A stretch of DNA of 61,674 bases, counting the filler, from Choristocarpus tenellus KU-1152 (lineage: Eukaryota > Protista > Phaeophyceae), in the NCBI GenBank assembly GCA_964200185.2. It is 10 parts of 10 records of this genome, joined end to end, with 100 filler letters (N's around TTAATTAATTAA, not from the genome) between each part and the next. Parts side by side here need not be neighbours in the genome. Positions count along the whole stretch, not along the records: positions 24,444 to 27,658 come from CAXNAD020021480.1; 9 more parts are not named here. One strand, 5' to 3'. A model generated the notes under the pieces. It did not search any database, was not told the DNA's origin, and saw only the letters and a list, made by a program, of their open reading frames with translations. Of the stretch, positions 7,901 to 27,758 are shown piece by piece. Made by a program: the position numbers and the translations under genes. How positions within the stretch are numbered: position 1 is the stretch's first letter; every line of letters begins with the position of its first letter.

Positions 7901-9751
7901 ACAATATGGATGAAAACACAAAATTAGAGGGACTCTGTTAGTTCTGTTGCCTTAAGGAAGGATGTATCCCCCTGTAGTTGCTGTTGTATTTTCATCTTGC
8001 TGCTTTTGCAACGAAGCGAATCAGGACGGTGCACAGATGCTAATTGTTAATGTGTGATCTATATATGATTTGAAGCGTGACAAAGATCGTAGCTTTGCAA
8101 TAAAACAACAGAACTATCCTGTAAGAATGATATATACTCCAGTGCCAAGAAAAGTTATGCACATATTTTATTTTTAATGAAGTGATTGTTAAGTAATTTT
8201 CCTGGATTAAAATTGGACTGTCATGAGTACAGTGTTGACAAAACCCCCCCGAATTGATACGAAAAAGTGCTTGATAAAACTACTGAGAACTAAAAGAATA
8301 GCACAAATAAAGTATTGTACTCTCAAGAACTTTGAAGTAAGTAGTACAATAAAATATTGCACATTGCAAGGGAATTATGGTGTTCAGATCTTTCGCTTTA
8401 CGCTTCTAGATATCCTTCAATACGACATCAAAGTAAACTACTCCAGTTACTCTTCTACACGGGGATAATGGTGATGCACAACCAACTCTCTCGGTGTGGA
8501 GAAAATAAAATAAATTCTGAACCATAACGACAAAAAATATCATCGTACACTCTCCAGATATTTTTCCTGAAGAAATAGTCCCCAGCATCATGTGAAATTC
8601 ACTGAAGAAAAAAAAAGAAATATTTAATCTCATCAAGCGCCTGGGGAAAAAATTACTGGAAACATTGGATGGATGCCCTGCAAAAAATAAAATAAACGCA
8701 ATCGACTCTAACTGATATTCCAGTCAATCAAGCTGTTCAAGCCATTTCACATGGCTGCACTTTTCTCATTGCTGTGTGTCCTCTCTTGGTACAGAGAATG
8801 GAGCGCCATCCAAACAGCAACCTCTACTCCTGCTAGTTATTCTGTCCTCTCAGAACTATATCAAGCTTGCCCCTCCTTTAAATATCCGAGGATCCAGCTC
8901 TTCTCCACAATTGTGTTCACCACCCCACCTCTTCTTCGTTGGAGTGGAAAGGGTATGCCCAAAAAAATCTCCAGCCCTTATACTGCTAATATGGTCGATA
9001 TCAACCAAAAATAAGCTCAGCTTAAGCGAGGCAGAGTGTAGTTGTTCAAGTCTGCTCATTGTCAAACTTACAGCTTCAGCATCAACTCTTGTGGAGATTA
9101 TGGGCGTGCCAATTCCATTGCTTCCCAACTTCCCTCCCCCCCCCTTCATCACCATTCCCACCAGAAACTCTCACAGACAGGAAATAGTGATGGAGGGTGT
9201 TGTGCTGCAGAACATATATTGTGAGAGGACTTACGCATGCCGGCTCTTTACAACTCTCTCCATGGTTGGTGACATATAATTGAACAGTCTGTACATGTAT
9301 GGGGTGGGGACTCCCACGATACTGGGACCTTGACTTGGGGTAGGCGTTGGAAGACCTTGAGATTAAGGCTGGCGAGCTCCTGACCAACAACAGCATCACC
9401 AGGGCTCACGAGTAACTCCAGCTAGAATAAGAGCATAAGGATGTACTTGAACCACAGAGCCTCAGGGATGAGCTAGTGGAGGTAGTTCATGTTTACAAGG
9501 TATAATTATTCCATGTTGAACAAAGGAGGCTTTTGTGGTGGCACAGGAGGGTGGGAGTGGGCAAATGTCGATCCAGGTAGTCCTGGCCGTCCACATCACG
9601 CTTGTCTCGCACTCTGTAGCTGCCCATTTTTTGTCAGCAAGAATGAATGGATAAAGAAAGTCAGAGGGAATTAGAGGGAATGGATATGGCATTTAAGTGG
9701 AAAAGGAAAATCCTACACTCAACTCAGTGTGGAGCCTTGAGCAGTCCCATT

Positions 9752-10010
9752 GAGCCAAAGTAAACAAGAGGTACCCAGGTTTTGACTGTTTTTAGCTTTA
9801 AGTATATTTTTTACTTATTTGCAATTCACCCATATGTTTATGCATGAAGTTCTAAGTTTGACTTTGGAGTATTTATTTATCTTTTATCTGAAACTTTTTC
9901 AACAAAATTCAGAACACATCCTATACACATTTGCAAAAATGGCGAATTTTGCATATATTTATCAGGACCCCTAAAATTCAACTCTGGGCACCTACCATTT
10001 ACTTTGACTC
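9752..10010 (+). mobile_element. MITE family B
   Basis: TIRs GAGCCAAAGTAAA / TTTACTTTGACTC; internal similarity to copies at 4684, 11420, 18664, 20507 and 59580. Confidence 0.85.
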
Positions 10011-10156
10011 ATCATTACAACTGTTGAGTCTCATTTGACATAGGGCCATGGCGATTTGTGATAAACCAGTCACGAAAAGGAGTTCTATGTACAAGTTCAG
10101 TTTGGTGCTTGTTACTATTCCAGAATCAGAGTTGATTACTGGGAATGGGCGGTGCG

Positions 10157-10620
10157 CTCATGAATCAAATCTTGGCATTTTGAGTATAACGCAATTTGGA
10201 TGTGTGCTGTAATGGGTGGCCAACAGACAGGGAAACTGGTGTGGTTTGAGTTGGGCTTGGGAACTCAAGAAAACTCCTCCTTCTGCTTGCTCACAGAAAT
10301 GCGCATGTTTTTTAGGGAGTAGGGTGATCCTAAAACACAAGGTACTGATAAAAAAAACGGTTTTTGAGTACAATGGACAATGTAACTGCAAAAAACTGGC
10401 GTAATGTACACTGGACAGTGCCGAAAATGAGAAATGTACCCTTTGGGAAATGTCGAAAAAAAGACATTCATGTTCCCTTCTCCACTTGTCACTGTTGGAT
10501 TGGATTTTAATTGCAATATAAATCAACACAGGTGCCCCCCTCAAATGACACAATTTGATCTCAAGGGAAGATTTTGTCGTACAACACAAAAACAAATGCC
10601 AGGCACTGGGTTTCGCTGAG
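10157..10620. mobile_element. Possible old non-autonomous TIR element
   Basis: Degenerate terminal inverted match CTCATGAATCAAATCTTGGCATTT vs reverse complement CTCAGCGAAACCCAGTGCCTGGCATTT; no TSD seen. Confidence 0.3.
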
Positions 10621-11419
10621 GGTCAGGGATGCCCACACTCGTCGTAGATCACCCCTTCTGCCTGCTTCACCTCGAGAATGACATCAAATCGCTCACTGGT
10701 GGCTCCGCAAAATGTTTTTCCACCAACTGCACGATAAAAGAGGCTTTGTGGGATATTTCCTGAGAGAACTCTATCTCAAAATTTACGGCACAGGAAATAA
10801 TGGTGAGTGAGGGTAAAAGGCAATGTAGCAAGGGTGAAGTGTGAGGAGTGAGGGCAATGAGGTGAACCAAGCCAGGAGCGAGAGGTAGAGGAGATATCGC
10901 AAGGTTTACAAAATGGTCTGGAGTGCATGAGTTTCGTTGTGCAAATGTGGTTGTGAATAGAGCAAGGGATATCTTTTCAGTGATGGTTTCTTGTTCATCA
11001 CCCAATCAAGAAAAGAACTCGGATCATATTCTTGTTGAATGCCTGTGTAGCAAGATGTCATGTTATGCTGTATCAAATCTATGCACCTCTTTCAGTGACT
11101 TTCCCAGCTCAGTCTGGTTCTTCGGAATTTCCATGACTCTATGAAGGAAGAACCATTAATAATATCACACTCATAGGGTCTATTGTTGAATCAGAACCTG
11201 GATGGAATTCATGGGGTCCCACCTTCCGTCACAAATAATTGCTCAAAGGAAAGGGGGAACAAAGAAAAGGGAGGCTTGTGGGCTTGACTGCTTGAGATGG
11301 AGGGATCGAGGTGGGGTAGAATAGAGTAATGCCAGCAACTTCATAAAAAAAGCTCGGGCATGTCCCATGTGACAACATCGCCTTATGGACATTCTTCACC
11401 TGCTTGAGGTGGTGCAAAA

Positions 11420-11657
11420 GAGCCAAAGTAAACGAAGGGTACCCAGATTTTGACCATTTTGCATATTTAGTCTGTTTTCAATCTTTTGCACTTCACCTAT
11501 ATTTCTATGGATGAAGTTCTGAGGTTGAATTGAGAGTGTTTATTTCTCTACTGTTCAAAAATTCTCTGGCACAATTCAGAAAATACCGTGGACACAGTTA
11601 TAAAAAAAGTCGATATTTGCGCATTTTTTTTTGTCAGCATCCTTAAAGTGCTACTCT
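11420..11657 (+). mobile_element. MITE family B, right TIR lost
   Basis: Starts GAGCCAAAGTAAACGAAGGGTACCCAG; similarity to 9752 ends just before the Copia LTR. Confidence 0.75.
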
Positions 11658-24443: not shown

Positions 24444-27337
24444 GGGGTCCCTCGATGTGCGGCGCTGCGAAAGCTACCCCCACGTCTCTTTATTTGCCAC
24501 TGTCCAATTGTGTGTTAATGCATGTACATCACCGACTGTTGTATCTCACCTGTACTACTTCATACTGTTTTGCACGGCCAATTTCGTGGTCCTTCGTAAC
24601 CGTGGATCCCCGTGTTGCGTTGTTGTGCCCAATTAATTATCTGGAAAAATACATTTAACGCTCTGATTCGATGACACGCGCGACAGGTATTCATGCCCAA
24701 AGTGTTCCATCATGCATATGGGCGAGTGTGCCTACGCGGAGATTAGAGACGATGAGAGACACAAGGATCGATTATGTATCAAATGCCCCATGGCACAGGA
24801 GGGCAGTGAAGGGTCTGGATCGGTGGGGAACGAAGCGGCAGGTCGGGGCAGGGGCAAGGGCAAGGGTAAGGCTCTCGCAAGGAGCGCGGGCGGATCACCC
24901 ACGACGCAAAGCCTTTTACGTCTCCCCTCACGCAGCGAAACGGCCGACATGGAGAAGTGCATGTGGGTCTCGGCGTGGTTGCACATTATACAGACACACA
25001 AGTCGTCTCTGCGTGTTTGTTTTCGCGTTGGTTTGCACATAAGTCTTGGCTGCTTTTACATCATGTGGATTGCTCGTCCTTTGTACCTTGGATGTATCGC
25101 TTTTTTGGAGGGTACGGCCTGACATTTTGGAGATGCCGTGGAAGTATTGTCAGGAACTCACTTAATGAAAAGATTGCCTGCACCGTATCTTACTATGCCG
25201 TCCTTCTTGTCATGCTGTCTGTCTACTGTGTCGTGTGTCATGATGTCCAAGCAGGAGTGAGAACACTGCACTACACGACCTTCGCCCTCTCGACCCCATG
25301 GTATCCTTAGACAAACTTGGTGATTTCGCCTTCCGCAACGCGCCAAAGCTCACCATAGTGTCCATTGCCGCCAAGCCAAGACTCCTCATCGACGAAGAGG
25401 CGACCAACACACACCTGCGCGAGATGCTTCAGTGCTTGCGACCTAAGATGCATCCTCAGGGCACCATCGTGCTCATTGTGCCCCACCCGTGGAAGGCGCA
25501 ATTACACCGCCTAGTAGGTGAGTTGCAGAGTTCGCAAGTGCTGGAATACGGGGTATATTACGGGAGACCGATGAGATCTGGGTGGCCGTTATCATTCCGT
25601 GTGCCGTGTCCGATCGAATATTGTGCGACCGCTCAGGAGATGCGGATTAGGTCGTGTGTATTCCTTTTTCACTTTCCCCATGTTGTTTCATGTCCTTCGT
25701 ACCTTCTACTTCCTTTTGTGTTGCTTGCTCTTTCCCTCCGGCAACTACGTACTTCTTTGTTTCATTGTCCGCGAATCACATGCTGGCGTTACTCATCTTC
25801 ACTACATTGTTTTTGCCATATTTACTTCTATTATTACTTAAATTCCTATTGTTTGCAATTTTTGCATTGGTTATTTGCCTTGCGTTCCACACTCATTGTA
25901 CTATTATAATGTTAGTGGTATGAGATTTCATGAATCCCTACGATAACTACTTGTGTGATGTCACTGTCAAGTTTGACGCATGCCAGACCCACGCGCTCGC
26001 TCCCGCATTCTCTTCATTCAGAGGCTTTTACTGCGTCAAAGGTGGGCTTGATGGCGGAGGATCATCCCCTAACCCTAATATACAAGACGAGGAGGGGGGG
26101 GCGCCCTCAATTAGGCACAGATAACCATCTCAGATGTTGCCAGGACATGATTCTTCTCACGCACAACGATGGGACAATGTTCACATGCAATGAGCGAGTC
26201 ACCGTCGACAACATCTTTGGCCACGGGCGTGATGCAGCTCCTCCGGTACTCCAAACCATGTTGGACGTCGAATACGAAGGTGCTGCCTCGGACATCCCCA
26301 TGAAGGCCCTCCACTTCCTCCTTAGCAGGTTCATTAATAACATCACACACATCCTTCTTCACAGAAGCAGCGATTTTTTTTTGTATAGGTGTAGGACATC
26401 GTTAAACAGTAACAGAATGAGCTGGGTGACGGTTCAGGGGCGCCAATCCATCCCACGAGTTTGTTTCCCGAATCGGTACGTTAAGCGTCAAAACGCACCA
26501 AGAGTGTGTTGCCCTGTATCGGAACGTTACTCATATATTGGGACATGATGAATCCGTGCGCAATACAATATACCACGTTAGGGCTAATTTACGAACTGCC
26601 CTCCTATGATAGGTACACGAATGCTGGGGACACCGTCGTCACCTACAGTGCAGAGAGGCACAATGTGGTGGAGGCGGCCCTTGAACGGAGCAGGAGGGTG
26701 GAGGTGTTCGTGTCCAACGTGGCGTCAAAGGATGAGGTGAAAGAGAAGATGGACACGTCCTTCGGCCAAGGATGTGCTGGCTTTTTTTTTCCATTGCTTT
26801 CCAACTTGTTGTCTGTTTTCGTTCCCTATGGATAGGTCTCGGGTGTGCAATTGTACTGGTAATGTTTCCTTGTAGATGTCTACACGTTGCCAACAGAGTG
26901 CACGCAGTTACCCACACCACCGCTGGAAATCGCGAGTCCCCAAGACTTTGACGTGATCGTCGGTACGTCATAATGTCCTCCTTCCCCACACGAACAAAAA
27001 ACAAACGTGCTGCAGTACACCACAACATCTTTAACCAACGCCGGGATAACCCATACATATGTGACAAAACCTTATGGCATGGCTAACCCACTTCACTGCC
27101 ACATTGTTGAGCTATCACATGTACGCACATGATGTTCCAGGTATCCACGTCTCCTGTTCAGGAACGCATGATAGACCCTTCCTGCCTGGCGGAAGTCTTG
27201 GCGCAGACCCTCGTCCCAACAGAGACGCAGCGATGTATTGCTGAGGCCGTCCACCCTCAGGGAAGGCAATGGGACGCGATGAGGCGACCATTTCCGTTGC
27301 GAAGACGGTGGCGACGGACTTTGGCTACCAGATCGAG
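24444..27337 (+). CDS. PHD-like Zn finger + degenerate beta-class DNA amino-methyltransferase (N6_N4_Mtase-like) multi-exon gene or pseudogene; exons <24444-24483, 24687-24865?, 25133?-25184, 25255-25517, 26022-26328, 26613-26773, 26876-26962, 27141-27337?
   Basis: Phase-compatible splicing gives C..YSCPKCSIMHMGEC..LCIKC, then LREMLQCLRPKMHPQGTIVLIV, LTLIYKTRR..CQDMILLTH and DIPMKALHFLLSRYTNAGDTVVTYSAERHNVVEAALERSRRVEVF, i.e. motifs VI-VII-VIII-X-I-II in beta order. Confidence 0.7.
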
Positions 27338-27758
27338 GTGAACGTGGTATAGAATGCGCTAACTTACGTATTTTGTGAAAATCGAACGGCAGAGTTTAGT
27401 TACCAGCACGCAGGAAATACTATTTATTTTTATTCGTTAGTCCTAACCTACCTAATGCGGCACCCAATTACGTCGTGTACAAAAATATGGGCCTTACAGG
27501 TAAGTATTGCATCAGTAGTGTGTTCGACTTTTTGCCACAATAAGGTTGCCGTTTTTGCACCACCTTCTTCGGACGATATTACCTCCAAATCACGAACATT
27601 CATGAATCGCCGTACTCTGCCCCCCTCCCCCAAACACGCCTCGACCCCACCCAAACCCNNNNNNNNNNNNNNNNNNNNNNNNNNNNNNNNNNNNNNNNNN
27701 NNTTAATTAATTAANNNNNNNNNNNNNNNNNNNNNNNNNNNNNNNNNNNNNNNNNNNN

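Follow-up and report, generated by a model that had tools for sequence, protein, structure and literature searches.

The window analysed here is a stretch of 61,674 nucleotides, filler included, joined from records of the brown alga Choristocarpus tenellus KU-1152 (assembly GCA_964200185.2), and the piece considered below, positions 24444-27658 counted along the whole stretch (record CAXNAD020021480.1), carries a gene fragment on the + strand. The exons of this fragment encode part of a Cys-rich zinc finger, a basic tract, and a domain predicted to be a methyltransferase scaffold whose catalytic motifs have been replaced. Taken as a whole, the evidence makes it probable that the piece is a decayed copy of a highly repeated pseudo-methyltransferase family that travels as transposon-like cargo.

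Four public sequencing runs, X1 and X4 among them, were aligned to the piece. Because its depth is high over exons and low over introns, X4 behaves like RNA. An initial annotation, made by eye, had joined separate reading frames at four GT-AG junctions, and the peptides that it quoted are present in the frames given, namely, YSCPKCSIMHMGEC-x15-CIKC followed by GRGRGKGKGK, KLTIVSIAAKP..GTIVLIV, LTLIYK..CQDMILLTH..DIPMKALHFLLS, and YTNAGDTVVTYSAERHNVVEAALERSRRVEVF. Two of the junctions, 25517/26022 and 26328/26613, have GT..AG borders, are compatible in phase, and are used in homologues; they are confirmed by X4 contigs that skip both introns, one for the first (228 nucleotides [nt] long, with a shorter side of 113 nt and a cut that can be moved by 2 to GT..AG) and four for the second. 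Of the runs, X4 alone shows exon-biased depth and spliced contigs. Further, the C. tenellus protein P0001 is spliced exactly as predicted over 26328/26613, where it reads ..HFIVNRYTNAGD.., and the exon map of the Scytosiphon homologue P0067 agrees with both junctions. The conserved introns and the spliced contigs bear out the proposal of a eukaryotic, intron-containing gene.

The remaining two junctions stand only in their acceptors. The donor at 25184 proposed for acceptor 25255 is ruled out because the exon 24687-25184 that it implies would hold an in-frame stop at 25120-25122. The donor CAT|GTGGGT at 24962|24963 is homologous to the donor CAT|GTGAGC of the Scytosiphon locus L002, and an X4 loose end reading ..GACATGGAGAAGT into 25251 fits it; we accordingly predict 24962|24963 to be the true donor. 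The acceptor at 24687 likewise holds, and the 32-nt segment 24452-24483 proposed as the first exon is probably intronic: it shares the low X4 depth of the intron in which it lies (Table 1), its ATG is missing from the C. tenellus copies L001 and L005, and L005 has no GT donor either. Joining an upstream CxxC-bearing exon through this segment was also rejected, as that frame meets a stop in L001 and L005. Downstream, no homologue has an equivalent of the exon proposed at 26876-26962, and the real exon that follows is 27141-27334. A candidate mini-exon at 27455-27497 was discarded as well, since by comparison with homologues the following exons fall at 27141-27334 and past the contig end. Exon-by-exon Pfam searches of the piece returned nothing relevant, Rfam families and tandem repeats were searched for in the piece and none was found, and its internal repeats are short chance-level matches only.

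Table 1. Features of the gene fragment in the piece, in coordinates of the whole stretch
Feature	Positions	Strand	Evidence
Intron, 3' part, cut by the piece edge	24444..24686	+	X4 depth 24-43, vs 600-2000 in the next exon
Exon, second part of the Cys-rich zinc finger (CPKC-x3-H-x3-C-x15-CIKC), Gly/Ser and basic GRGRGKGKGK tract, ..SETADMEKC(M)	24687..24962	+	Splice sites (acceptor AG 24685-86, donor GT 24963-64), homology
Intron, GT..AG	24963..25254	+	Scytosiphon L002 junction homology, X4 loose end
Exon, N-terminal part of the methyltransferase-like fold: strand beta4 KLTIVSI, motif IV position AAKP, helix D, strand beta5 GTIVLIVPHPW	25255..25517	+	AlphaFold2 secondary structure of P0067:76-325; 61% identity to P0067
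Intron, GTGAGT..AG	25518..26021	+	One X4 contig skips 25516-26019
Exon, middle of the methyltransferase-like fold: beta6/7 hairpin LTLIYK, strand DMILLTH, variable loop, start of motif X helix DIPMKALHFLLS	26022..26328	+	80% identity to Choristocarpus P0001; AlphaFold2 mapping
Intron, GT..AG	26329..26612	+	Four X4 contigs skip 26327-26610; same junction in P0001
Exon, truncated in the window copy: strand beta1 GDTVVTY, SAERHN at the motif I position, helix A, strand beta2 RRVEVF, next helix	26613..26770	+	Alignment with L001 and L005; P0067 residues 318-324 unmatched
Intron-equivalent sequence	26771..27140	+	No homologue match; X4 depth 89-326
Exon, linker and first helices of the C-terminal region, VSTSPVQERMIDPSCL..TVATDFGYQIE	27141..27334	+	tblastn with P0067 and P0003
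Intron, with a C-rich low-complexity run where the contig ends	27335..27658	+	L006 alignment

The central domain was modeled on residues 76-325 of P0067, the closest full-length homologue, within a 42-row family alignment in which the window exons stand as separate rows; these exons are 50-74% identical to P0067 and 80-87% identical to Choristocarpus proteins. The AlphaFold2 model has a predicted local distance difference test score (pLDDT) of 84 and a predicted template modeling score of 0.84. A Foldseek search of the PDB with this model placed N6/N4 DNA methyltransferases in all of the top 40 rows (E values of 6.5e-9 to 3.6e-5). Most of these belong to the beta class, including TTHA0409, CcrM, M1.HpyAVI, the rotifer N4CMT, M.BceJIV, MboIIA, PvuII, and RsrI; two type III Mod subunits appear toward the bottom of the list. 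Structural comparison with VIA, using sequential aligners, gave a Z score of 20.2 for CcrM (6pbd; 222 residues aligned, root mean square deviation of 3.4) and 17.4-19.4 for TTHA0409, M.BceJIV, MboIIA, HpyAVI, N4CMT, RsrI, and PvuII over the whole domain (residues 1-250). Because the homologue model matches beta-class methyltransferases across the entire domain, the assignment of the scaffold made by eye is correct, and the domain is predicted to be a beta-class N6/N4 DNA methyltransferase scaffold. The likeness to CcrM, M.RsrI, M.PvuII, M.MboIIA, M1.HpyAVI, and TTHA0409 extends from the fold to the order of its elements, with beta4 first, then the motif X helix, and beta1 and beta2 last (205-222 residues superposed; Z of 17-20). 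The variable loop in the exon 26022-26328, which has low model confidence, sits where beta-class enzymes have their target recognition region. Unlike in those enzymes, the domain is encoded in brown algae by an intron-containing eukaryotic gene and has a zinc finger and a SET-like domain as fusion partners; it shows no detectable sequence similarity to them: PF01555 is not matched in Pfam even at E values of 5-10 by the exons, by P0001, or by seven full-length homologues, and a PDB sequence-profile search of the domain was blank, leaving the methyltransferase likeness beyond the reach of every sequence method applied.

The most conspicuous departure from the beta class concerns the active site. 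At the motif IV position, which follows strand beta4 (KLxIVSI), the canonical DPPY is replaced by AAKP in the window copy and by GAEP, SPGK, TRHD, or GLHD in other members, with no conservation at this position across the family. At the motif I position, after strand beta1 (GDTVV), the canonical DPFxGSG gives way to SAERHN in the window copy and to SAEKHS, PGEGTE, GVESTT, HAESDG, or TADKDG elsewhere. The replacement of the DPPY and FxGxG positions, as claimed initially, thus extends to every family member. For the accompanying claim that the acidic residue of motif II is replaced, the picture is less clear: the position is apparently V, A, or L (RRVEVFVS), with an invariant Glu three residues earlier in the strand, in a placement taken from the sequence register rather than from a residue-level structural alignment. 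Because the erosion is old and common to all subfamilies, while other positions are invariant and between-species omega (the ratio of nonsynonymous to synonymous substitution rates) is 0.4-0.5, indicating moderate purifying selection, the inactive-looking state appears to be maintained rather than merely decaying, and for this reason we call the family pseudo-methyltransferases. We infer that methylation activity has been lost.

Retention of the whole fold, the high model confidence in the cofactor-side strands, and the invariant Arg, Thr of the GDT signature, and two Glu around the former motif I-II region would also suit a still-active DNA or RNA amino-methyltransferase with noncanonical catalytic and cofactor residues. 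We consider this improbable, as the catalytic and glycine-rich loops vary from subfamily to subfamily and have no aromatic residue, Pro-Pro, or Gly-x-Gly, and a conserved Glu or Asp occupies the place of the first motif I glycine. As for an active partner, no paralogue with intact catalytic motifs is seen among the matches listed, most of which are fragments, and nothing found speaks for the N6-methyladenine/N4-methylcytosine system at which the initial annotation had hinted.

Eukaryotic relatives of the fold place the pseudo-methyltransferases in context. The bdelloid N4CMT (8s9o, 8s9m, and 8s9n; Z of 17.7-18.5) is likewise a eukaryotic protein with an intron-bearing gene in which a beta-class fold is joined to a chromatin-type module, there a chromodomain, whereas the brown-alga family carries different partner domains. 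In N4CMT, the catalytic motifs are retained and the enzyme is active; the brown-alga family has lost these motifs. By functional analogy, METTL14, Tetrahymena MTA9, and similar inactive partners of MT-A70 methyltransferases might offer a precedent, in which a methyltransferase fold without a working site serves as a scaffold or nucleic acid-binding subunit. METTL3 in METTL3-METTL14 entries and the Tetrahymena MTA1c chains match the model with a Z of 13-14 in VIA. Unlike METTL14 and MTA9, the family belongs to another clade, with the bacterial beta class rather than MT-A70 as its nearer kin. A viral structure library also returned N4/N6 methylases for this fold, and brown-alga genomes are rich in phaeovirus insertions (10.1101/2024.02.19.579948); both facts would accord with the gene being what is left of a methyltransferase gene from an integrated giant virus (Phaeovirus). 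Such an origin is very improbable in our estimation, given that the gene is multiexonic with conserved, spliced introns, that no viral marker genes lie beside any copy, and that the Feldmannia virus adenine methylase matches only weakly, at rank 42, with the phage and Pandoravirus enzymes no better than the bacterial ones.

The finger encoded at the start of the piece, together with its basic tract, is conserved (C-x2-C-x3-H-x3-C-x15-C-x2-C in the piece) in the Ectocarpus proteins P0057 and P0053 and at the locus L010. The piece contains only the C3-C8 half of the eight-ligand pattern of PHD-type fingers, and the His spacing deviates from that of PHD. Upstream, three conserved exons are common to the Choristocarpus copies L001 and L005 and the Scytosiphon locus, with coordinates of L005:26-1338 in Choristocarpus, L002:8627-9569 in Scytosiphon, and L007:8952-9443 in Ectocarpus. 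The last of them ends in ..GGWNxGxC-x2/3-C-NPPPT(S/A)R followed by GTGAGT, in phase 2 and about 210 bp further 5' in L001 and L005; it fits the acceptor 24686|24687 in phase and supplies a first Cys pair that lies outside the piece. If joined at 24687, it would give an eight-ligand cross-brace finger of the form C-x2-C-x9-C-x2-C-x3-H-x3-C-x15-C-x2-C. The start 'APNR' of P0053 gives no evidence of the upstream exon, being a read-through of the intron end. What the piece itself shows of a PHD-like finger is a Cys-rich half pattern: neither the window exons nor the seven full-length homologues match the PHD profile (PF00628) in Pfam, and the single profile hint is a weak FYVE match in P0053 (E value of 0.025, 15 bits), which leaves the label PHD-like plausible but unproven. 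Current annotations separate the upstream exons from the rest, as a 145-amino-acid (aa) gene of their own in Scytosiphon, or omit them, and the P0067 gene model begins within the finger.

At the other end of the protein, the last 250 residues of family members form a further domain that is encoded mostly past the 3' end of the piece; in the copy L006, its exon starts about 90 nt beyond the homologous C-rich run. The model of these residues has a pLDDT of 73. In an exhaustive comparison with 48,161 PDB chains, 59 reached a Z of 2 and 36 had a Z of at least 5; 35 of these 36 are SET/PR-type entries, the remaining one being BurB, the title of which does not show SET/PR. PRDM11 is the best SET/PR match (Z of 7.9), followed by PRDM9, SET8, PRDM5, and others, and on SET/PR domains, such as those of PRDM11, PRDM9, SET8, and ATXR5, 104-144 residues superpose with a Z of 5-7.9. 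Foldseek returned only weak SUV420H rows (E value of 0.59), ESM Atlas searches by shape and by features were uninformative and blank, and a PDB sequence-profile search was blank as well. The match to PR/SET domains is modest and without a sequence hit, and, unlike in those domains, the NHSC cofactor motif and the catalytic Tyr are not recognizable by eye in the LYLRVAATCP or (D/N)(L/I)x(I/F)(S/T)(C/S) segments of the family alignment. The predicted architecture is thus a finger, a dead amino-methylase shell, and then a shell for which the SET/PR likeness is middling; its combination of zinc finger and SET-like domain recalls proteins with PHD and SET domains. An intact protein of about 600-900 aa would run from an N-terminal region through a PHD/FYVE-like cross-brace finger and a basic linker to the beta-class fold and the SET/PR-like fold. 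Such a protein would not methylate DNA; the dead enzyme shell may instead be a module that binds DNA or a partner, and the finger and SET-like shell modules that bind chromatin or peptides.

A word search led from the piece to P0001 (80% identical), and an exhaustive HMMER search with P0001 retrieved 55 proteins. The named members are all from brown algae, namely, Choristocarpus, Discosporangium (P0018, 555 aa), Scytosiphon (P0067, 590 aa), several species of Ectocarpus (P0057, P0023, P0065, P0066, P0053, and P0042), and Undaria (P0056); none of them has a protein name or a Pfam domain, and they constitute a new family that is so far known only from brown algae. Intron positions are common to members from Choristocarpus through Ectocarpales. 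The Choristocarpus protein is 57% identical to that of Scytosiphon, with a synonymous divergence (dS) of 0.65, and only 34% identical to that of its order-mate Discosporangium, for which dS is saturated. Because Choristocarpus is nearer to Scytosiphon than to its order-mate, these values, uncalibrated by control genes, suggest old paralogy or horizontal movement.

The family is strongly repeated in C. tenellus. In X1, 2,625 short contigs (90-99% identity) are spread over the exons as well as the introns, and single variant positions have as many as about 30 different contigs. The copies L001, L005, and L006 are 83-88% identical, their intron divergence of 0.11-0.14 is about equal to their coding divergence, and omega among them is 0.55-0.96. 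Choristocarpus contigs are too short to define the ends of an element. In Ectocarpus sp. CCAP 1310/34, the family gene is carried in a 9.3-kb block (L003:5749-15004 and L007:5858-14388; 89-98% identity), and a third locus, L008, has the same right end at 11180, giving a unit with sharp borders and unrelated flanks at three insertion sites. The family seems to be transcribed and correctly spliced, as seen in X4, and to multiply at the DNA level with its introns, which points to the cargo, or a part, of a DNA transposon-like element; of the possibilities raised initially, transposon cargo fits best.

The left part of the Ectocarpus repeat also holds an open reading frame (ORF) with an invariant DGNHR motif (L003:6090-6668 on the + strand; the same in L007 at about 6399), which has many copies in ENA and Logan assemblies, in clusters of up to 45 members, and which language-model features in the Atlas place near the ParB_N cluster (0.95). 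This ORF was not found beside the Choristocarpus or Scytosiphon copies. Its homologue P0084 and the C-terminal family fragments P0072 and P0077 each have a longest contig of 9,123 bp and possibly come from one Logan contig. Because of the possibly ParB-like ORF alongside the family gene, the repeat would resemble the ParB-methyltransferase accessory genes of algal giant transposons, which are the closest known kind (PMC12477816). The giant element Sola1-1_Ec32 of Ectocarpus carries an accessory protein of 1,104 aa with a ParB-like and an N4C/N6A methyltransferase domain (PMC12477816). The brown-alga family shares with this protein a bacterial-type amino-methyltransferase fold in repeated, transposon-like algal DNA, and like the ParB-methylases, the Ectocarpus family gene adjoins, or is continuous with, the DGNHR ORF, the ParB likeness of which is a lead only. 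Unlike the Sola1-1_Ec32 protein, in which the methyltransferase domain is recognizable, the family has no Pfam match and no motifs and has a finger and a SET-like domain, and the ends of the Ectocarpus repeat differ from the AACCG..CGGTT termini of Sola1-1. Family peptides are absent from the supplementary sequence files of PMC12477816, and neither the family nor the Ectocarpus repeat ends were found in the published Ectocarpus transposable element library and proteins, both weak negatives given that the files are partial and line wrapped.

Several observations weigh against reading the piece as a decayed copy of such cargo. The copy number in C. tenellus is uncalibrated against a single-copy gene, and X4, treated as RNA-like from its depth pattern alone, has no RNA label on its record. 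No transposase, terminal repeats, or target site duplications were found for any copy, and the Ectocarpus repeat shows its sharp ends with no inverted repeats, target site duplication, or transposase seen. The ParB-like reading of the DGNHR ORF has no Pfam or PDB profile match behind it; the SET-like match is middling, with Foldseek and the Atlas failing to confirm it; and the catalytic loss is read from sequence and a predicted model, such that an unusual cofactor site is conceivable. Finally, the family has a low-copy, host-gene look in Scytosiphon, Discosporangium, and the ENA assembly ERZ26962164.

This last point, along with the absence of a detected transposase, is what would be expected of an ordinary, possibly domesticated host gene for a chromatin regulator, with copies arising by segmental or tandem duplication and the piece representing its pseudogene. 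The Scytosiphon gene is a single copy among genes for a 2OG-Fe oxygenase, an Arf GTPase, and an RRM protein, Discosporangium has one copy, ERZ26962164 has two diverged, intact-looking paralogues without shared flanks, and both the retention of intron positions across orders and the between-species omega suit such a gene. Nevertheless, we judge this explanation rather unlikely, as thousands of diverged fragments lie in one genome and the three Ectocarpus insertions have identical sharp ends and unrelated flanks; the contrast between the dS of Choristocarpus with Scytosiphon and the saturated value for Discosporangium is also what DNA that is mobile or spreads horizontally, or else old paralogy, would give. 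In ERZ26962164, the two copies (L010:8443-12111 and L011 at about 8800-11650), on long eukaryotic contigs, are diverged members of the same subfamily (about 70% at the nucleotide level), have much shorter introns, and have been split into fragments by prokaryote-style gene calls. An ordinary retrotransposon neighbor, a Ty1/copia-type polyprotein ORF (rve and RVT_2), lies at L011:15707-18172, 5 kb downstream of the L011 copy.

Under the preferred reading, in which the piece is one decayed copy of a multiexon family highly repeated in its source organism, damage is to be seen in the gene itself, and this had escaped the initial annotation, as had the location of the N-terminal exons and of the C-terminal SET/PR-like domain outside the piece. 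Judged relative to L001, L005, L006, P0003, and P0067, the window copy is missing about 30 nt at 26770/26771, comprising the last eight codons of the exon (AYKDGKWK in other copies) and its GT donor; one X1 contig has 28 extra letters at this point. A 1-nt deletion in the A run at about 27261-27262, where L005 and L006 align as GGGAAAGG against GGG-AAGG, splits the exon 27141-27334 into two frames (tblastn against P0067 and P0003), the extra A at about 27261 being present in some of the X1 and X4 contigs. With these lesions, the window copy can no longer give the full protein. Other copies are defective as well, with a TGA in the exon end of L005 and a scrambled C terminus in P0003 relative to the intact-looking L010.

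To our knowledge, brown algae lack 5-methylcytosine and the classical H3K9 and H3K27 repression marks. Against this background, one may tentatively picture the family as a lineage-specific, mobile-element-borne double pseudo-methyltransferase, in which a PHD/FYVE-type finger precedes a dead N6/N4 DNA-methylase shell and a dead SET/PR shell, that acts as a noncatalytic reader or clamp on DNA and chromatin and has possibly moved horizontally between distant orders, as the Choristocarpus-Scytosiphon dS of about 0.65 might indicate. Were this so, the protein could label or protect copies of its own element, or be turned against them by the host. Cases in which eukaryotes have recruited bacterial-type amino-methyltransferases are few and currently attract interest, as with the rotifer N4CMT and the ParB-methylases of algal transposons, and an unnamed brown-alga family that is invisible to Pfam can be set beside them. 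Because the shell has been kept across orders while the active site is gone and chromatin-type modules are attached, the family is a clean candidate pseudoenzyme. How the very active transposons of brown algae are controlled or tolerated is not understood (PMC12477816), and a repeat-borne pseudo-methyltransferase offers a concrete, testable candidate for the transposon-host interface.

For annotation, the family accounts for a major unclassified repeat of Choristocarpus, and several of its present gene models are truncated or split. Where assemblies of this repeat family break, the C-rich low-complexity tract of the last intron is likely to blame: at 27600-27658 of the window and at about 1600-1700 of L006, the contigs both break off or contain runs of N. 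At least one copy may adjoin telomeric or interstitial telomere-like sequence, as at 27039 one X1 contig departs from the repeat into TAACCCTAACCCA, which is telomere-like.

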